Part shown: positions 20,745-63,442 of the stretch, piece after piece | Layout: the number at the start of each line of letters is the position of its first letter | How positions within the stretch are numbered: the first letter of the stretch is position 1 | Sequence record: NC_019407.1 | Length of the DNA: 64,000 nt | Direction: 5' to 3' (one strand) | Notes under the pieces: generated by a model | What the model was told of the DNA's origin: nothing | Databases searched by the model: none | What the model saw: only the letters and a program-made list of their open reading frames with translations | Made by a program: the position numbers and the translations under genes

Positions 20745-23552
20745 TTACCCCTCACATGCCAAGCAGTCGGACGAGGCCGTCGGATTGAGGGCCAGCATCG
20801 CGGCCTCCTCGGCGGAGCCCTCGGTCACGGGCTCCTCGGCGAACTCGATCTTCTTGCGCTCGACCTTGGCGTTGGTGTTCTCGGCCCGCTTGGGGGTCGA
20901 CGAGCGCAGGTAGTAGAACGACTTGACGCCGGCGCCCTCGCCCCAGCCCAGGAAGTGGAGTTCCGAGAGGTACTCGGCGTCCGCATCATGGGGCACGAAG
21001 ACGTTCAGGGACTGGCCCTGGCAGATCGACTTGGAGCGGTCGACCGCCAGGGTCACGACCCAACGCTGATCCATCTCGCGGGCGGTCCGGTAGACCTTCA
21101 GGAGATGCAGGCGCTCGGCTTCCGGCATGGTCACGCCGTGCTCGGCCAGGAACTCGGGCGTGAAGTGCTGGATCGAACCCTCGGCCGCGACGATCGACTT
21201 CCAGACCGCCTCGGTGTCCAGGCCCAGTTCGCCCAGGCGCTTCTTCAGCCAGCGGTTCTTGACGGCGAACGAGCCCGACAGAGTCTTGTGCAGGAAGGTG
21301 TTGGCCGGGATCGGCTCGATCGACGGCGAGGTGCCCCCGCAAAGGATCGAGGACGAGGCGTTGGGCGCCACGGCCAGCTTGTGGGCGAACCGCTCGCCCG
21401 TGCCTTCCATGTCCGGCGCCTCGCCGCGCTCCTTGCCCAGCAGCAGGGAAGCCGCGTCGGCCTGCTTGCGCATGTGGACGAACAGTTCCAGGTTCAGCCG
21501 GCGGGCGGCGTGACTCTCGAACGGGATGTCCAGCATCTGGAGCAGCGAGTGGAAGCCGAGCAGGCCCAGGCCCACCGACCGTTCGCGCACGGCGCTGTAG
21601 GCGGCGCGGTGCATCTCGTCCGGCGCGTTGTCGATGAACACCTGGAGGCAGTTGTCCAGCATGCGCAGCAGGTCTTCGATGAAGGTCGGGTGATCCCGCC
21701 ACTCCGGCCACTTCTCGGCGTTGACGCTGGAAAGGCAGCAGACGGCGGTCCGCATCTTGCCGAAGATGTCGCGGCCCGAGCCCAGCATGATCTCCGAGCA
21801 GTTGCCCGTCAGATAGCCGTTGAAGACCAGACGGTGGCGCAGGGGCTCGGTCGCGCAGAAGACGTCGGCCTTGTGCGCGAGCGGATGGACGTCGGCGACC
21901 GTCGCCGCCAGGATCGAGGCCACCCCGATCGCGGCGTCGCGCGGCTCGATCGCGTGAGCCAGGACGATGCCGCGATCCGACAGATAGGCCACATCCCACT
22001 CGGCGAGCGAGAAGGCGCTGACCGTGTCGGTCAGGCGGATGCGCGGGTGCAGGCCGGACTCGATGGCCATGAGGCGCATCTGGCGGATCAGGTCGACGTC
22101 GGTCGAGCCCACGGTCAGCCAACGCACGCCGTCGATCTCGACCCACTCGCCGGCCGCGTCCAGGGCGCCGGCCAGCCACGTCAGGCGGCGTTCGACGGTC
22201 CAGGCGAATGGCACCACGCCGGGATTGATCACCTGCGGGTCAAAGCGCAGGGTCGTGCCGTGCTCGTCGCCTTCCAGGTTGGTCGACAGCGTCGACAGGC
22301 GCTTGAGCACCTCGCCCGGCAGGCTCGCGGGCACGAAGGCCGACAGCCGGTTCTTGTCGTCGAAGCCGGCGAAGGTCGTCCACCCGGCGGCATAGGCCTG
22401 CTCGATCGGCGGCGTCGCCTCGGCCAGCCCCTCGATCACCGGCGCCTGGGCCTTGGCCAGCACGGTCCCGAGCTTCAGTTCGCCGGCCCGCACCTCCACG
22501 CCGTCCTGGGTGTAGAACTTGTGGTAGGGGGTGCAGTCGAGATAGTCGCCATCCTCGAACCAGACGCGCACCAGCGCGGCCTTCTCGTCGGTGGGGTTGG
22601 TCTGCTGGATCAGGACGCGGCTGAATTCCTCGCCGTTCCAGACGTCGTGGTATTCGCCCTTCAGGGCCTCGATCGGCAGGTGGCCGTTGCGGGTCAGGAT
22701 TTCGGTCTCGCCGGTCACGCAGAGGTTCGACTGGCGGACCTTGAGGCCGAGCTTCTTCTGCGCCTCGGGGAAGTGGCGGTTGGAGGTGTCGATGAAGTGG
22801 ATGTAGGGCTCGCCCGTCTGCATCCGCGTCTCGATCAGCAGGCGCCACAGTTCGCGCGCCCGCTCGACGCGGATCACCTCGCCGGTCTTGGGCGAGCGCA
22901 GGGCGAACTCGGTGTCGTCGCGCACCGCGATCATGAACTCGTCGGTGACGTTGACGGCGTTGTGCAGGTTGGTGATCTTGCGGTTCTGGTCGCCGCCGGT
23001 AGGCTTGCGGGCCGTGATGAACTCGCGGATTTCCGGGTGGCTGATGTCCAGATAGACGGCGTTGGAGCCCCGGCGCGTGCCGCCTTGGCTGACGGCGAGA
23101 ATCAGGCGATCGTCCACCGCCATGAACGGGATCACGCCGGTCGACTGCGAACCCTTCGAGGTCTTCTCGCCCAGGCCGCGCAGGGCGCCGTAGTAGGAGC
23201 CGATGCCGCCGCCCATCGACGAGAGCCAGATGACCTCGTCATAGTGCTCGGAGATCGACTCGCGGCTGTCCTCGATCGCGGTGAGGAAGCAGGAGATCGG
23301 CAGGCCGCGCGCGGACCCGCCGTTCGACAGCAGGGGCGTGGCGAACATGAACCAGAGGTTCGAGACATAGTCGTAGAGCCGCTGGCCGTGCTCGGCGTCA
23401 TCCGCGAAGGCCGCACTCGCGCGCGCGAAGGCCTCCTGGGGCGAGCTTTCCCCAGGCAGCAGATAGCGTTCACGGAGGGTCTGAAGGGTGAAGTCGTCGA
23501 GCAGGGCGTCGCGGGTGAGATCGATCTTGATTTCGGAGGGTGCGACAGCCAT
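20745..23552 (-). CDS. nrdA: Ribonucleotide reductase class Ia alpha subunit (intein-containing)
   Basis: FATPLLSNGG, GLPISCF, SQGGTRRGS, SNL[intein]CSEI, APNASSS and KSFYY motifs; C-terminal CLAC. Start taken at ATG 23552. Confidence 0.95.
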   Translation of the reverse strand: MAVAPSEIKIDLTRDALLDDFTLQTLRERYLLPGESSPQEAFARASAAFADDAEHGQRLYDYVSNLWFMFATPLLSNGGSARGLPISCFLTAIEDSRESISEHYDEVIWLSSMGGGIGSYYGALRGLGEKTSKGSQSTGVIPFMAVDDRLILAVSQGGTRRGSNAVYLDISHPEIREFITARKPTGGDQNRKITNLHNAVNVTDEFMIAVRDDTEFALRSPKTGEVIRVERARELWRLLIETRMQTGEPYIHFIDTSNRHFPEAQKKLGLKVRQSNLCVTGETEILTRNGHLPIEALKGEYHDVWNGEEFSRVLIQQTNPTDEKAALVRVWFEDGDYLDCTPYHKFYTQDGVEVRAGELKLGTVLAKAQAPVIEGLAEATPPIEQAYAAGWTTFAGFDDKNRLSAFVPASLPGEVLKRLSTLSTNLEGDEHGTTLRFDPQVINPGVVPFAWTVERRLTWLAGALDAAGEWVEIDGVRWLTVGSTDVDLIRQMRLMAIESGLHPRIRLTDTVSAFSLAEWDVAYLSDRGIVLAHAIEPRDAAIGVASILAATVADVHPLAHKADVFCATEPLRHRLVFNGYLTGNCSEIMLGSGRDIFGKMRTAVCCLSSVNAEKWPEWRDHPTFIEDLLRMLDNCLQVFIDNAPDEMHRAAYSAVRERSVGLGLLGFHSLLQMLDIPFESHAARRLNLELFVHMRKQADAASLLLGKERGEAPDMEGTGERFAHKLAVAPNASSSILCGGTSPSIEPIPANTFLHKTLSGSFAVKNRWLKKRLGELGLDTEAVWKSIVAAEGSIQHFTPEFLAEHGVTMPEAERLHLLKVYRTAREMDQRWVVTLAVDRSKSICQGQSLNVFVPHDADAEYLSELHFLGWGEGAGVKSFYYLRSSTPKRAENTNAKVERKKIEFAEEPVTEGSAEEAAMLALNPTASSDCLACEG
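21801..22721 (-). mobile_element. Intein (307 aa) at the NrdA catalytic N-x-C-x-E site, with degenerate LAGLIDADG region
   Basis: Begins CVTGETEILT, has block B LDCTPYHKF and WLAGALDAAG, ends LVFNGYLTGN before C+1. Confidence 0.93.
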
Positions 23553-27561: not shown

Positions 27562-28650
27562 TTAGAAGCGACCCCGGCCGCGCGAGGCGCGTTCGGTGCG
27601 CTCCTCGCCTTCGTCCTCGTCATCGCGACCCCGGCCGCGCGTCGGACGCTCGTCACGCTCGTCCTCCTCGTCGCGGCTGCGACGGGCGGGACGCTCGTCA
27701 CGTTCCTCGCGGTCGTCGTCGCGGCTGCGGCGAGCCGGACGCTCGTCTTCCTCGTCGCGCGAGCGACGGGCCGGACGTTCGTCCTCGTCGTCACGGCTGC
27801 GGCGGGCGGGACGCTCTTCCGGTTCGTCGTCGCGCGCGGCGCGGCGGCTCGAACGCTCTTCGCGCTCCTCCGGCTCGTCATCGCGGCTGCGGCGGCTCGA
27901 ACGCTCTTCGCGCTCTTCGCGGTCGTCGTCACGCGAACGACGGGCCGGACGCTCGTCCTCGTCGTCGCGGCTGCGACGCGAGCGCTTGTCCTCGACGGCC
28001 TTGGGCTTGTCGTCGTAGTCGTCCGGCGTGCCTTCCAGCAGCGCGGCCAGTTCCGTCTCCGGCATCCAGCGCACGATCTTGAACTTCGGCGCGTACTTGG
28101 TGACCTTCCGGCCGCCCTTGGTCTTGCCCTCGAAGGGGTTGGAGTCCAGGGCGATGATCGGCACCTCGCCGGGGTGGTTGCGGAAGCTGTTGCCGAAGTC
28201 CTTCAGGAACGCGGCCAGCGCCCGGCGCTTGGAGACGTTGTTGGCCTGGAAGACCATCTCGACGTAGGGCTCGTCGATCAGACGGAAATCGATCGTGTAC
28301 TGCTCGACCGGGCCGTCTTCCTCGCCGTAGGGACCGTGGTCCGGCAGGCTGTTCTTCGACGGCTGCGGGCCGTCTTGCAGGGCGACCATTTCTTCGTAGA
28401 CGACCTTGCCGTCCACCCAGATCACCCAGCCGCGCTTGTAGGAGCGCAGGTTGGCGGCCATTTCAGTGCCGTTCTTCAGCGGCTCGTCTTCGGCGCCGTA
28501 GGAGTACGTGCCGTCGTTGCCGTCGAACTTCATGAAGGCCTTGCCGTCGCCGCCGCCCTTGAGGTTGTTGGCCTCGTTGGCGATCGCGGCGTAGAAATCG
28601 TCCTGGCTGGCCAGATAGCCGCCGGCCGAACGCGTGGTGAGTTCACCCAT
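27562..28650 (-). CDS. Putative single-stranded DNA-binding protein with long R/D/E repeat tail
   Basis: Globular N-terminal domain, position in the replication cluster, ~130-aa mixed-charge tail. Confidence 0.6.
   Translation of the reverse strand: MGELTTRSAGGYLASQDDFYAAIANEANNLKGGGDGKAFMKFDGNDGTYSYGAEDEPLKNGTEMAANLRSYKRGWVIWVDGKVVYEEMVALQDGPQPSKNSLPDHGPYGEEDGPVEQYTIDFRLIDEPYVEMVFQANNVSKRRALAAFLKDFGNSFRNHPGEVPIIALDSNPFEGKTKGGRKVTKYAPKFKIVRWMPETELAALLEGTPDDYDDKPKAVEDKRSRRSRDDEDERPARRSRDDDREEREERSSRRSRDDEPEEREERSSRRAARDDEPEERPARRSRDDEDERPARRSRDEEDERPARRSRDDDREERDERPARRSRDEEDERDERPTRGRGRDDEDEGEERTERASRGRGRF
27580..28010 (-). repeat. Imperfect coding tandem repeats (RRSRDDEDERPA / RRSRDDDREERE)
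   Basis: About 8-9 units visible in protein and DNA. Confidence 0.9.
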
Positions 28651-38692: not shown

Positions 38693-38781
38693 TGGAGCTT
38701 CGGGAGGGACTCGAACCCTCATAGGTGTTCCCACCAGCAGAGATTTGCAATCCCGCGCCTAACCTCTCAGTCCACCGAAGC
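38693..38781 (-). tRNA. tRNA-Cys(GCA) with long variable arm
   Basis: GCTTCGG/CCGAAGC acceptor, U73, encoded CCA, loop TT-GCA-AA, T arm GAGGG-TTCGAGT-CCCTC, extra GGTG-GGAA-CACC stem. Confidence 0.9.
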
Positions 38782-39004: not shown

Positions 39005-39878
39005 TTCCGATGGGCTGAGACTACACCCATCAGCAATCCCGCTTCGAGGATTATTCCCCAGGTGCGACCCCAGGTATTCCCTCGACGTCCACCAGACCCC
39101 TTGCGGTAGTCCAGTCCGAGATCATCGCCGCCGTTCTTGCGCACCCCGAAGGGATTGCGGGTCTGGCGTTTGACCCATCATGGCGAACTACTCGACAGTT
39201 CCTTCCCCGCTGGGCTTGCGACCCACTCACCGGCGCTAACCGGCTGACGAAGCTCTTCCTATCGACACCTCGCGGGCTTGCGACCCTTGAGATGACTCCG
39301 TTACCCGAAGGCCGGAGCATTTGGCGACTTACGTCCGCCACTGGACCAGTCTTTGCGTTTTTCATCGAAGCGGGGATTGAACCCGCGACCGACAGCTTAA
39401 GAGGCTGTTGCACTACCACTGTGCTATTCGCAAACCCACCAAGACGTGCTGGTCCAGTTGTTCCCAGAGCTTTTGACCCCAGAAATGCAACACGCCTCAT
39501 ATCTTTCGCCTTGCGGGCTACTCGACTGCTCTTCAGGACCCCGTCTCCCCCAACCTTTCGGCCAGGATGCCCAGCACCCCTCGAACTGAAGCAAAGCTCT
39601 TCACCGCGAAGTGTCGAACCCTGCAACCCAAACGGTTATCCGTACTCCCTAGACGCGCTTGCACGGGATAGTCCGCTTGCGACGGACTGGCGGTTAAAGC
39701 CTCGGAGTTACCCCGGCCCCGCCTTGTCTCCCACGGTCTTCAGGTCTATCCCCTTTTGCAAGAGGCGGCCAGCTTCCCAGCCCGGACCCGTCGGCTTCCT
39801 CTGTCCTCTTGCGAGGTCGGGCGGCCTATGGGAGACCGTCCCTGTCACCCCGTCGCCGGGGCTTTCGTCAGAAGCGAC
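39005..39878 (-). ncRNA. GOLLD-like giant structured RNA (~870 nt)
   Basis: Promoter and terminator bounded; at least 8 GNRA and 2 UUCG hairpins; GTCGAGTAG twice, one in a loop-E-like AGUA/GAA context; internal tRNA module; next to phage tRNAs. Family call is from recalled GOLLD features, not a search. Confidence 0.72.
39362..39433 (-). tRNA. tRNA-Lys(CTT)-like module embedded in the GOLLD-like RNA; degenerate acceptor stem, no CCA
   Basis: D arm GCAC/GTGC, ACAGC-CTCTTAA-GCTGT, GCGGG-TTCAATC-CCCGC; only about 4-5 acceptor pairs. Confidence 0.8.
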
Positions 39879-39969: not shown

Positions 39970-39998
39970 TTGACATTCTCGTAAGCCCATGCTAGGTG
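39970..39998 (+). promoter_or_regulatory. Sigma73-type promoter of the tmRNA/tRNA unit (divergent)
   Basis: TTGACA-15 nt-GCTAGGT. Confidence 0.72.
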
Positions 39999-40003
39999 TC
40001 GGA

Positions 40004-40375
40004 AATCGTTGTAATTCGGACAACGGAACTGGCGGCAAGACAGGGGTGCGAATCCCCTCGCCTCCACCATCGACGCCCGGCGCTGGGAGTACGCGACTCC
40101 TGGGCAGGGTGCGTTACCCTGGCGGGCTGCGGCCCGAGCCAAGGGGTAGCCGGGCGTCGTTGATGGGGGCGACTAGCTTTCGATTGGCGCTCGGGACTGA
40201 AAGACGCAACGGTGGGTGACCTCCACATCGGCTTGCCGGTGATCGGGTCAGGCAACAGTAAATGTCGCCGACAATGACAACGACGTCGTGGCTTTCGCCT
40301 CGGCTCGTGAAGCCATCGCCGCCTAATAAGCGGTAGAGGAGCCCGCCGGGAGCTTGGCAACAGAATCCCGGCAAC
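40004..40375 (+). ncRNA. ssrA: Two-piece (circularly permuted) alphaproteobacterial-type tmRNA
   Basis: Acceptor piece ends GAC-AGGGG-TGCGAAT-CCCCT-CGCCTCC-A-CCA (40069). Intervening segment closed by CGACGCCCGGC/GCCGGGCGTCG. Coding piece starts GGGGGCG (40165), giving G3:U70. Tag 40267-40326 reads ADNDNDVVAFASAREAIAA with tandem TAA. Confidence 0.93.
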
Positions 40376-40507
40376 CCCCTTTCGCAGGCGGGAACACCAA
40401 CAGGCGATCTGTCGGGCGACCGATTTCCGATCCGTGTTCCCGTCTTCGAAAGGTGGTCGGGCCTACCCTCTTGGTGTGCTATCCAAGGGTCTGGCCACTT
40501 TACAGAA

Positions 40508-40586
40508 CGCGGGGTAGAGGAGTCCGGTTGTCCTCGTCTGGCTCATAACCAGGAGATCGTGGGTTCAAATCCCACTCCCGCTCCCA
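40508..40586 (+). tRNA. tRNA-Met(CAT), initiator-like
   Basis: CGCGGGG 5' end with C1:U72 mismatch, CT-CAT-AA loop, GTGGG-TTCAAAT-CCCAC, CCA encoded. Confidence 0.9.
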
Positions 40587-40995: not shown

Positions 40996-41080
40996 GGTAC
41001 GGTGGCTCGACAGGTAAGGCATCGGCCTCATAAGCCGAGGGTTCGTCCCAATCCTGGTTCAAATCCAGGTCGTACCTCCA
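40996..41080 (+). tRNA. tRNA with CAT anticodon (Met or Ile2) and long variable arm
   Basis: GGTACGG/TCGTACC acceptor, U73, CCA, TCGGC-CTCATAA-GCCGA, extra GGG-TTCGT-CCC arm, CCTGG-TTCAAAT-CCAGG. Confidence 0.88.
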
Positions 41081-41154: not shown

Positions 41155-41184
41155 AAGCCCCCGGAGCCTCGCTTCGGGGGCTTT
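41155..41184. terminator. Intrinsic terminator ending the tmRNA/tRNA unit
   Basis: AAGCCCC-CGGAGC...GCTTCG-GGGCTTTT. Confidence 0.8.
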
Positions 41185-41538
41185 TCAGTTCTTGACCACC
41201 CGCAGGCGCCGGGCCTCGCTGGCGCGCTCCTCCGCCGCCACGCGCGAGACGTCTTGCAGGTGCGCCTTGGCGATCAGGTCGGGTGCGCCCACGGCCCGGA
41301 AGGGCACCTTGACGGAGAGGTCGACATAGCGCCGCAAGAGCGGCTCGAATTCCAGACCCCGCGCCTGGGCGATCCGCGACAATGCGCCGGCGACGATCGC
41401 CACGACCAGGACGTTGGTCGGGGTCTCCTTGGTCAGGGTCCAGATGCCCGGTATCGATTGTCCAGGATGGAGTTCCTGCCGCGACACGTCATCGGCGGCG
41501 GCGCGGAAGAGGTTCTCGTAAGGGACGTTTTCGAGCAT
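41185..41538 (-). CDS. Hypothetical protein
   Basis: High GC3 from ATG 41538; the upstream part of the listed ORF is not gene-like. Confidence 0.65.
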   Translation of the reverse strand: MLENVPYENLFRAAADDVSRQELHPGQSIPGIWTLTKETPTNVLVVAIVAGALSRIAQARGLEFEPLLRRYVDLSVKVPFRAVGAPDLIAKAHLQDVSRVAAEERASEARRLRVVKN

Positions 41539-49941: not shown

Positions 49942-50034
49942 GGCAAACTCCGAAAGGCAGGCTTGAGTGAATGTGTTGCCGATCCTTCTAGCGAGGCGTT
50001 CTGGCTCTGTCAACACACTCCAGCCTACCGGGAT

Positions 50035-52454: not shown

Positions 52455-52469
52455 GTCATGAATCTTGAC
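52455..52469 (+). promoter_or_regulatory. GTCATGAATCTTGAC element / primase promoter
   Basis: Followed by TTGACA-16-GCTAGA. Confidence 0.78.
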
Positions 52470-52528
52470 ACCTGTCGGGATTGGAGGCTAGATGGCTCCC
52501 GCCTTTCACCCCCGTCCCGACAGGCTTC

Positions 52529-57749: not shown

Positions 57750-58220
57750 ATGTCCCTGATCGAGAAGCTCAACAACGACGCCCTGGCCGCCCGCAAGGCG
57801 GCGATGCGCAAGGAAGCCGGCGGCGAGCACGCCGTTCTCCTGGCGACGGTCGCGGCGGACGCCGCCATGATCGCCAAGAACGACCGCCAGACCCCCGGCC
57901 GCGACGTCACGGACGAGGACGTCGTCGCCACGCTGAAGAAGCACATCGGCGGCATCGACACCACCCTGGCGGAACTGACCAAGCGCGGCCGGTCCGAGGA
58001 GGAGCAGTCGCGCTTCATCGTCGAGCGCCGGCGCCTGGAGGCCTATCTGCCCCAGACCCTGTCGGGCGGCGATCTGACCGACGCGATCCACGCCACGGCC
58101 GCCAAGCTCGGCGTCGACCTGCACGTCAAGAGCACCAAGGCGATCGTCGCCGATCTGCAAGAGCAGTTCCCTGGCCAGATTGATTCTTCGGAAGTCGCGC
58201 GCTATCTTAAGAACGTCTGA
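57750..58220 (+). CDS. GatB/YqeY domain protein
   Basis: TDEDVVATLKKHI...LEAYLPQTLS signature. Confidence 0.85.
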   Translation: MSLIEKLNNDALAARKAAMRKEAGGEHAVLLATVAADAAMIAKNDRQTPGRDVTDEDVVATLKKHIGGIDTTLAELTKRGRSEEEQSRFIVERRRLEAYLPQTLSGGDLTDAIHATAAKLGVDLHVKSTKAIVADLQEQFPGQIDSSEVARYLKNV

Positions 58221-62719: not shown

Positions 62720-62933
62720 GGTTACGCTCCAGGAGGGCACGCAGCGAGGGGATGTCGCCGTCCGCCATCTGGTAGAGGCGGACGAACTCGTCGTAGTCGT
62801 ACTCGTTGATGAGGTCCCGCATCGCCTGCGGGAGCTTGTCGATGGTCTTGAAGAGCCGGCGCCGATAGCGCTGGGCCTCCATGCGCCGGCGGATGGCGGC
62901 GTGGCGCGTCTTGGCCGCCCGAACGCGCCGCAT
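62670..62933 (-). CDS. Small basic hypothetical protein
   Basis: ATG overlaps the upstream stop (TGATG). Confidence 0.65.
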   Translation of the reverse strand: MRRVRAAKTRHAAIRRRMEAQRYRRRLFKTIDKLPQAMRDLINEYDYDEFVRLYQMADGDIPSLRALLERNRVLKQQALLVDQDPLP

Positions 62934-63442
62934 CAGGCCGCCGGGGCGATCCAGTCCTCGCGGTCGTCGGCGTAGAGCACCGCCGCCAGCTTCCCCGTGC
63001 CGATGTCGCACTTGGCCGCCGCCTCGACCGCCTGGGGCGCGGTGGCCCCCATGTGGAGCGCGCCCAGGGCCGACCACGTGCCCGAGCCGAAGGCGTAGAA
63101 CGGCGCGCGCATGGTGTAGGCCGGCGCGCCGCTCTCGAACCGCAGGCAAAGACCATCGGGCAGGATGATGTAGCCGTTGGTCTCCTTGTCCGGCTTCTCG
63201 GGGCGCCCCATGTCGCAATAGGCGTCGCGCCCGCCGCTGGCCAGCCACTCGTCGAAGGCCGGCGAGCGCACCCAGTCGTTGAAGATTTGGACGTAGGCCG
63301 ATTCACCCGCCGCGCCGAACAGCAGCGTGCCGCCAGGACCCTTGCGCTTGCCGATCTTCTGGACATTCCCGCAGGGCGTCCAGAGGTCGAGAACCCGAGC
63401 GTCAGCGGCCAGCACGCCGTCGCGATAGACGATACACGTCAT
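62933..63442 (-). CDS. Ntn-hydrolase / HslV-proteasome-like peptidase
   Basis: M-T1-CIV...LAAD, AFGSG, ALGAL and QAVEAA..D.GTG motifs. Confidence 0.8.
   Translation of the reverse strand: MTCIVYRDGVLAADARVLDLWTPCGNVQKIGKRKGPGGTLLFGAAGESAYVQIFNDWVRSPAFDEWLASGGRDAYCDMGRPEKPDKETNGYIILPDGLCLRFESGAPAYTMRAPFYAFGSGTWSALGALHMGATAPQAVEAAAKCDIGTGKLAAVLYADDREDWIAPAA

Follow-up and report, generated by a model that had tools for sequence, protein, structure and literature searches.

Genes for transfer-messenger RNA (tmRNA; ssrA) have been recorded in phages more than once, and the molecules that they encode differ in architecture. In the 2014 tmRNA census, the phage entries comprised mycobacteriophages and Bacillus phage G only (PMC4131195). 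The tmRNAs of the mycobacteriophage Bxz1 group and of phage G are phage-borne, dependent on the SmpB of the host, one-piece, and unpermuted, while mycobacteriophage DS6A carries only a tRNA-like domain, lacks a tag frame, and is thought to be inhibitory (PMC4131195). A later ARAGORN survey of 18,146 phage genomes found tmRNA in 402, 53 of them two-piece, and its Table S1 lists CcrMagneto (218,929 bp) as 'Permuted', along with CcrKarma, phiCbK, CcrSC, and CcrBL9 (Buchholz et al. 2022; PMC9004378); the relatives Bajun and Shash have also been reported with a tmRNA. The permuted tmRNAs of other phages and viral contigs (OM43 phage Melnitz, pelagiphages, cyanophages, Sphingobium phage Lacusarx, and Brevundimonas phage Bajun) are, like the one described here, encoded by complete genes of lytic phages without SmpB, often beside tRNAs. 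Here we analyze the tmRNA gene in a 64,000-nucleotide stretch, hereafter the window, of Caulobacter virus Magneto (NC_019407.1/JX100812.1; 100% identity by megablast; record position minus 62000 gives window position), a lytic phiCbK-like siphovirus of the Dolichocephalovirinae, genus Shapirovirus, with a 219-kb genome. Like those of the Bxz1 group and phage G, the Magneto tmRNA is phage-borne and predicted to rely on host SmpB, but it is permuted and in two pieces, and unlike that of DS6A it keeps every functional module. The existence of the gene is already on record and its kind is common, whereas no earlier description covers its anatomy, tag, or function; the novelty implied by an earlier interpretation made without searches (the sequence-only reading) was accordingly overstated, five phiCbK-like phages having been listed as 'Permuted' in the published survey. 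What is added here is an exact map of the gene, covering its promoter and intervening segment, both RNA pieces, the alleles of the tag, and the codon at which translation probably resumes. The element is a genuine, conserved phage two-piece tmRNA that is probably functional, and we consider it likely that it is a working phage copy of the two-piece tmRNA (ssrA) with a host-dependent rescue pathway, as proposed below.

The proposal of a phage-encoded permuted tmRNA held up with both detection tools, each of which calls the place that the sequence-only reading had reported. ARAGORN predicts one permuted tmRNA at 39977..40417 (plus strand), with the tag VADNDNDVVAFASAREAIAA followed by two stop codons, and the Rfam family tmRNA_permuted (RF04321) matches 40007..40326 over the full-length model (1-213) with 70.3 bits against a gathering threshold of 47 (E = 1.8e-11). 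Seven diverged relatives that were fetched all match tmRNA_permuted as well, with 70.7-89.8 bits. ARAGORN gives no call in Rogue, RBC8, CcrBL10, and Colossus, all four of which are detected by Rfam, and surveys built on ARAGORN therefore undercount the phiCbK-like clade. A homologous stretch is present in 29 of 29 related phage records, comprising 28 from Caulobacter phages, which represent three genera or more, and that of the Brevundimonas phage Bajun, whose copy carries a tmRNA annotation.

The limits of the gene follow from the comparison with phage BL57, in which similarity to Magneto ends sharply at two positions: only eight differences occur within 40005-40373, while the promoter spacer (39975-40004) and everything past 40373 are scrambled. 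The conserved RNA is therefore 40005-40373, about 369 nt. The ARAGORN limits (39977-40417) were rejected as too wide, since they take in the promoter spacer along with 44 nt over which BL57 is scrambled; the span of 39970-40400 given in the sequence-only reading is right as to place but includes the promoter and a non-conserved tail of about 27 nt. All parts of the RNA lie on the plus strand. The acceptor piece (40005-40069, about 65 nt), delimited by Rfam alignment, covariation, and the 5' limit from BL57, is composed of the 3'-side strands of P2 (40005-40038), the T arm (40042-40058; 40042-46 pairs with 40054-58) with the loop UGCGAAU, the acceptor 3' strand CGCCUCC (40059-40065), which contains U70 (40063), the discriminator A73 (40066), and an encoded CCA (40067-40069). 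It is separated by an intervening segment of 95 nt (40070-40164) from the coding piece (40165-40373, about 209 nt; Rfam alignment, folds, covariation, and the 3' limit from BL57), which opens with the acceptor 5' strand GGGGGCG (40165-40171), its G3 (40167) pairing with U70 (40063). The circular permutation lies in this order, the acceptor 3' strand and CCA (40059-69) standing upstream of the 5' strand (40165-71). As read from the sequence, the tRNA-like domain is complete, with a 7-bp acceptor stem, G3:U70, A73, the T arm, and the 3' CCA.

Within the coding piece, the acceptor strand is followed by a D-loop-like stretch with UUCGA (40172-40183), the 5'-side strands of P2 (40184-40213), and pseudoknot 1 (40212-40250), whose stem 1 is formed by GUGG (40212-15) and CCAC (40223-26) and stem 2 by UGACC (40217-21) and GGUCA (40246-50), and whose third loop holds a lineage-specific hairpin (about 40227-40240). 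Next come UAAAU (40259-63) as the resume context, the frame of the tag, and the tandem stops UAA UAA (40324-29), as identified with ARAGORN and Rfam. The stop codons lie in the loop of a small hairpin recovered by the minimum-energy fold (GCCGC 40318-22/GCGGU 40330-34), and the RNA ends with a 3'-domain helix (GCCGGGA 40345-51/UCCCGGC 40366-72), the loop of which carries GGCAACAGAA (40356-65), a motif of alphaproteobacterial tmRNAs that is present in the alpha_tmRNA consensus. The parts named in the sequence-only reading can thus all be read from the sequence, including the acceptor piece with its TGCGAAT T-loop and encoded CCA (40042-40069), the alanine identity given by G3:U70 and A73 (G40167:U40063, A40066), the segment of about 95 nt (40070-40164) with an 11-bp closing stem, which is recovered by the fold, and the tandem stops and helix after the tag (40324-29 and 40345-72).

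When the precursor is folded by minimum energy, the T arm and the acceptor stem are recovered, as are the 11-bp closing stem and a P2 helix that is long and irregular, and the whole-precursor fold beats those of shuffled sequences (z = -3.0); 29 pairs join the two pieces both in this fold and in that of the two separate strands, 22 of them belonging to P2. For covariation, ten diverged phage copies were aligned (alignment A3), the Magneto fold was projected onto them, and pairs were counted, with partners shifted by one to three columns as the control. Standard pairs occupy 81% of the cells, against 39-47% with shifted partners, and 40 pairs are changed on both sides, against 11-23. Pairing reaches 96% in the acceptor and closing stems taken together, with 12 double changes, 100% in the T arm, with two, and 77-87% in the P2 helices, with seven. 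The stop-codon hairpin (40318-40334) is 84% paired, three pairs of the 3'-domain helix show double changes, and so do four pairs of the extra hairpin in pseudoknot 1, which is missing in the host and in Bajun. Stem 2 of pseudoknot 1 covaries as well when alignment A3 is inspected by eye, being UGAUC/GAUCA in L125 and UGGCU/AGCCA in Bajun, and the acceptor pair 5:68 is G:C in Caulobacter phages and C:G in the host and Bajun. The RNA structure and, as set out below, the tag are under selection across the phage clade.

The closest known system is the two-piece ssrA of the host, Caulobacter crescentus/vibrioides, with which the phage gene has in common the permuted order of acceptor piece, intervening segment, and coding piece. 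Host and phage RNAs are alike in G3:U70, A73, the encoded CCA, the UUCGA stretch, the inter-piece P2, and pseudoknot 1; in both, the resume codon is preceded by UAAAU, and the tag has NDN close to its beginning and terminates in AA. The T loop is UGCGAUU in the host and UGCGAAU in Magneto, one base apart, and most phage relatives have the host form. Both RNAs end with a 3' helix closed by a loop with GGCAACAGAA; the host loop differs at two bases (GCCUGCC versus GCUUGG of the phage before the motif), and the stems, GGAGGGA/UCCCUCC in the host versus GCCGGGA/UCCCGGC in the phage, show a compensatory difference. The host gene is about 339 nt, versus about 369 nt for the phage gene (ARAGORN span 441), and the intervening segment is 28-33 nt in the host versus 95 nt in the phage. 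The acceptor piece of the phage, about 65 nt, lacks the 5' hairpin of the host piece, which is about 83 nt when counted from A2 (82 nt as published); the host coding RNA is reported to be roughly 210 nt. The extra hairpin inside pseudoknot 1 is found in the phage only and a long hairpin after the tag in the host only, and the phage has the probable resume codon GUC rather than GCG, a tag of 20-21 residues rather than 14, and tandem rather than single stops. By contrast with the OM43 phage Melnitz, whose tmRNA has a glutamine riboswitch in its 3' domain, no such riboswitch was found in Magneto.

This degree of divergence bears on whether the phage gene might be only a fragment or copy of host ssrA, left by integration or imprecise excision and without a role of its own. 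Numerous temperate elements have ssrA as their integration site and contain portions of it (PMC9004378), which gives such an origin a precedent, but the Magneto gene is complete, the phage is lytic, and blastn of the gene against 55 Caulobacter-type host ssrA loci, drawn from genomes found through the host tag, gave no match at E = 1e-5. In addition, the lengths of gene and intervening segment (about 369 versus 339 nt; 95 versus 28-33 nt) are not those of the host, and the gene occupies the same position in at least four genera, where it is under purifying selection. Recent capture from the host was rejected given this missing blastn match and the differing architecture, and a prophage attachment-site relic was rejected for a gene that is complete and conserved; we give the relic explanation next to no credence. 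The phage gene is instead, by these comparisons, an old, separately evolving alpha-type tmRNA.

The 11-bp closing stem of the intervening segment (40071-81/40149-59), recovered by the minimum-energy fold, surrounds three or four hairpins, and the segment alone folds better than shuffled sequences (z = -4.2). Its core (40082-40148) is 83-94% identical between Shapirovirus and Poindextervirus, conserved like the tRNA-like domain, while the stem that closes the segment is only 50-62% identical yet covaries; the inner hairpins keep their pairing through compensatory changes. Such conservation of the core is unexpected in a discarded spacer. That the core is a mobile or repeated element, or belongs to a known RNA family, was considered and rejected, since each genome has a single copy, confined to the tmRNA gene, and Rfam contains no match to it. 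The segment may act as a guide for processing, or it may remain after excision as another small RNA with a function of its own. A scan of IMG/VR with the T-arm motif gave at least 120 loci; of the 120 listed, 109 have a matching 5' acceptor strand downstream, with intervening segments that span 24-242 nt.

The tag frame was read in 14 phage copies from 13 phages, and in 14 of 14 the sequence AAAUGUC is identical; the tags listed here are the residues that follow it. In Magneto, UAAAU is followed by GUC and a frame of 19-20 codons that ends in ...AIAA and UAA UAA. Two starts can be considered, GUC (40264), which yields VADNDNDVVAFASAREAIAA, and GCC (40267), which yields ADNDNDVVAFASAREAIAA. The resume codon of the host (UAAAU/GCG) and of the Rfam consensus (UAAAU/GCA, which aligns with UAAAU/GUC of the phage) directly abuts UAAAU, as GUC does in the phage, and therefore GUC (Val) seems more likely than GCC, by a clear though not decisive preference. 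The GUC start keeps A at -4 and aligns the Colossus A-V-NDND with the host A-A-NDN, whereas with the GCC start the A at -4 is lost; in E. coli, an A at this position is important. A tag of 21 residues including the charged alanine, as a GUC start would give, is accordingly the more likely product. The register chosen in the sequence-only reading skips this GUC, the codon directly after UAAAU, and is not retained; its claim that the phage has a longer tag frame of its own stands, the phage tag exceeding the 14 residues of the host tag by 6-7.

The tags vary among the phages. ADNDNDVVAFASAREAIAA is found in Magneto, Karma, Swift, Ccr5, and Ccr10, AANDNDVVAFASAREAIAA in phiCbK, RBC57, and BL57, ASNDNDVVAYASAREAIAA in CcrBL10, AANDNAPFAVREAIAA in Rogue, RBC8, Bajun, and one IMG/VR contig, NDNDAPVMEQLLAA in Colossus, and NAANDNDVVVSTMTSVKLAA in two jumbo contigs of 322 and 317 kb. 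ADNDND of Magneto and AANDND of phiCbK, RBC57, and BL57 are one-base alleles (40271, A versus C). In every phage tag, NDN stands close to the start, and the last residues are a hydrophobic one followed by AA ([I/L]AA); the codons of NDN and of the terminal AA change only synonymously (GCC/GCA/GCU, AAU/AAC), and the middle of the tag is variable. The host tag is AANDNFAEEFAVAA, that is, (A)ANDNFAEEFAVAA, and its N-terminal (A)NDN block is common to the phage tags. Most viral tags are of the form ANDN...ALAA with 10-16 residues, while those of the phiCbK group are longer and probably start with Val. Given this distribution, the kept NDN block and [I/L]AA end read as selection to remain a degradation tag.

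A more far-reaching possibility is that the tmRNA works but that its longer, divergent tag alters handling by SspB and ClpXP, perhaps with a weakened or bypassed SspB adaptor, changes the protease, or marks products of infection. The added 6-7 residues are compatible with this, and so is the fact that the middle of the tag and the REAIAA end are phage-specific and conserved over Shapirovirus, Poindextervirus, and Brevundimonas phage Bajun. Moreover, Bajun has the same tag as Rogue despite a differing RNA, while the tag of Brevundimonas lutea is that of Caulobacter; the phage tag was therefore not copied from the host. The tag may change which adaptor or protease takes the tagged proteins. The parts of the tag that are conserved throughout, however, the NDN block and the hydrophobic residue with AA, are those that the host tag also has, which favors an ordinary degradation tag, and the middle differs between groups (DVVAFASA in one, APFAV in another, and DAPVMEQL in Colossus). 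Retargeting of tagged proteins is, on balance, improbable.

No gene for SmpB accompanies the RNA. The sequence-only reading had noted none in the window, and the observation extends well beyond it: in a tblastn search of E. coli SmpB against 50,697 phage records, none was found in Caulobacter or Brevundimonas phages, whereas the same search recovered SmpB in 68 phage records, down to about 40% identity. A phage-encoded SmpB was ruled out by this search over all phage records. Since Magneto and the related phages encode none, the phage RNA must, if it acts as predicted, use host SmpB, and likewise host alanyl-tRNA synthetase (AlaRS), elongation factor Tu (EF-Tu), RNase P, and proteases; SmpB binding is itself a prediction. 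The same dependence would suit a decoy or inhibitor, an RNA that would mainly sequester the SmpB of the host or act as a competitor of its tmRNA, and so shut down host trans-translation, as proposed for DS6A, whose molecule has little beyond the tRNA-like domain; a similar molecule strongly inhibits tmRNA (PMC4131195). A decoy would have no need of a tag frame, resume context, pseudoknot 1, stops, or 3' domain, yet all are conserved in the phages, and the exclusively synonymous change at NDN and AA indicates a frame that is translated. We regard a decoy as very unlikely.

Transcription of the working two-piece tmRNA that we favor would begin at a promoter-like site just upstream (39970-39995, plus strand), which consists of the -35 element TTGACA (39970-75), a 15-nt spacer, and the -10-like GCTAG (39991-95). 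TTGACA and GCTAG persist in every Caulobacter phage homologue despite a scrambled spacer, and the window contains three occurrences of the motif TTGACA-N14-17-GSTAS where 0.05 would be expected, a 60-fold enrichment over shuffled sequences. The other two copies (49988-50013, minus strand; 52465-52491, plus strand) are candidate promoters for the host polymerase. A promoter of the E. coli sigma-70 type was sought with a consensus scan and none was found, the call resting instead on conservation and motif enrichment. The promoter named in the sequence-only reading is therefore sustained by its conserved elements and enriched motif, but missed by the E. coli consensus scan. The site resembles the housekeeping promoter type of Caulobacter, with the consensus TTGACgS-N10-14-GCTANAWC.

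We propose the following pathway. Host RNA polymerase would start at the 39970-39995 promoter and produce one precursor, probably running through both of the tRNA-Met genes downstream. Host tRNA-processing enzymes would then free two RNAs, with RNase P cutting 5' of G40165, the 3' end being trimmed to the encoded CCA at 40069, and the 95-nt intervening segment being discarded. The acceptor stem and the extended P2 helix would hold the pieces of about 65 and about 209 nt together, and host AlaRS would charge the RNA by way of G3:U70 and A73. Host SmpB and EF-Tu would bring the charged RNA to ribosomes stalled on broken mRNAs, where translation would switch to the tag frame of the phage, with GUC 40264 as the most likely resume codon, and add about 20 residues ending in IAA. 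The ribosome would be released at UAA UAA, and the tagged fragment would be degraded by host ClpXP. The supply of phage tmRNA would be independent of that of the host, which is cell-cycle regulated and degraded by RNase R (review PMC3985003). The identity of the gene, the conservation of its structure and tag, and the lack of a phage SmpB are established by the sequences, whereas every biochemical step of the pathway, like the benefit, is inferred.

Several observations weigh against this account. The alpha_tmRNA model (RF01849, gathering 50 bits), proposed as a check in the sequence-only reading, has no match in Magneto at the gathering threshold, tmRNA_permuted matching instead. In a permissive search of the clan, the top model was beta_tmRNA, with 33.4 bits against a cut-off of 84, and the alpha_tmRNA score of Magneto is therefore lower still; even the relatives Colossus (53.5 bits) and Bajun (57.4 bits) barely pass RF01849. 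As for the association of the two pieces, the pairing gain of the mature pieces, -9.8 kcal/mol, is no better than that obtained with a shuffled acceptor piece (mean -9.0, standard deviation 3.2), and energy alone therefore lends it no support. The acceptor piece can also form a local hairpin, CGUUGU/ACAACG, which covaries in two relatives; the 5' end of the piece can pair either with the coding piece or with itself, both pairings covarying in some relatives. The acceptor stem and the closing stem make up a nearly continuous 21-bp helix over the RNase P site, which may be a substrate of an RNase III type and is unlike the host precursor. The paper on RNA-seq of phiCbK infection does not mention the phage tmRNA (PMC10688885), and we found no published data on expression, processing, charging, or tagging of any phiCbK-like tmRNA. 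Finally, the benefit to the phage, which would be extra ribosome rescue under its own control while host mRNA decays, is a conjecture. With regard to family, alpha-type marks are nonetheless present, namely the 3'-domain loop with GGCAACAGAA, the consensus acceptor GGGGGCG/CGCCUCC, and the tag start (A)NDN. The alphaproteobacterial layout of the sequence-only reading is upheld by these marks and by the permuted order, though not by the score against RF01849, and the Magneto RNA descends from an alpha-type tmRNA, and would work like one, while being too divergent for the curated alpha model.

The tmRNA locus is a stretch without genes that extends from a block encoding a DNA methyltransferase and a transfer protein to a helicase gene, and it also contains genes for tRNA-Cys, tRNA-Lys, and two tRNA-Met. 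The order Cys, tmRNA, Met, Met is the same in all relatives, across the whole subfamily. The two tRNA-Met(CAU) genes lie downstream of the tmRNA on the plus strand (40508-40586 and 40996-41080; ARAGORN), and a terminator scan picked out, 3' of the second, a hairpin (41167-41189, plus strand) that resembles a terminator and has a T run. The same scan found no terminator between the tmRNA and tRNA-Met genes. Given an interval without a terminator and a terminator-like hairpin after the second tRNA-Met, a single transcription unit of the tmRNA and both tRNA-Met genes is plausible. The neighboring tRNAs are unusually long: at 89 nt, tRNA-Cys(GCA) (38693-38781, minus strand) reaches no more than 33.8 bits against the tRNA model of Rfam, and the tRNA-Met(CAU) genes measure 79 nt (40508-40586) and 85 nt (40996-41080). 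In CcrBL10, one of the Met tRNAs carries an initiator annotation.

A second structured RNA lies in the same stretch. A full-length GOLLD RNA (Rfam RF02032; 39012-39498, minus strand) was identified with 169.4 bits against a gathering threshold of 150 (E = 8e-46), about 470 bp upstream of the tmRNA and transcribed away from it. GOLLD is also present in phiCbK and BL57 (165-170 bits), and an Rfam scan found none at the corresponding locus in Rogue, CcrBL10, RBC8, Colossus, and Bajun. Embedded in it is a tRNA (39361-39434, minus strand), the body of which is identical in all close relatives. Over 511 nt, GOLLD and tRNA together show 99% identity, and differences cluster at a single place, 5 nt of the anticodon loop. 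Magneto, Karma, Swift, Ccr5, and RBC57 have the anticodon CUU ('Lys'), and phiCbK, Ccr2, Ccr10, Ccr29, Ccr32, Ccr34, S2L, and BL57 have UCC ('Gly'). This pattern suggests that the tRNA with a swapped anticodon might be a target or decoy for anticodon-directed host defenses, or else a tRNA-like module of GOLLD and no ordinary tRNA. The tmRNA and GOLLD are both unannotated in the GenBank and RefSeq entries of Magneto, and their presence contradicts the statement of the genome paper that no RNA elements were found apart from tRNAs.

Other genes of the window were inspected as well. A peptidase annotated as 'HslV family' (62933-63442, minus strand) and a 'nucleotidyltransferase' (27562-28650, minus strand), sought for a link to the tag, have no Pfam match at E = 0.01. 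A gene annotated as 'tRNA amidotransferase' (57750-58220, plus strand) encodes a YqeY-like protein (Pfam PF09424, E = 9e-10), the only one of the three to be confirmed by Pfam. The analysis of these three genes yielded no link to the tmRNA. The large subunit of ribonucleotide reductase (20745-23552, minus strand) contains an intein at 21801-22721, which is already annotated in RefSeq.

Why phages should carry a tmRNA has been discussed in the literature, the proposals being sustained translation in the hijacked cell, recycling of amino acids, and inhibition of the host system (PMC4131195, PMC9004378). The lineage-specific features that are conserved in the phiCbK-like phages, namely the likely Val resume codon, the longer tag with a fixed REAIAA end, the pseudoknot 1 hairpin, and the conserved core of the 95-nt segment, could point to a distinct role beyond that of a spare copy, although we hold such a role to be unlikely. 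Caulobacter delta-ssrA strains are viable. Perhaps the most suitable system for testing these proposals is that of the phiCbK-like phages, for the host is a genetic model in which the two-piece tmRNA, SmpB, SspB, and ClpXP have been studied, as has the cell-cycle control of the tmRNA, and an RNA-seq time course of infection exists (PMC10688885).

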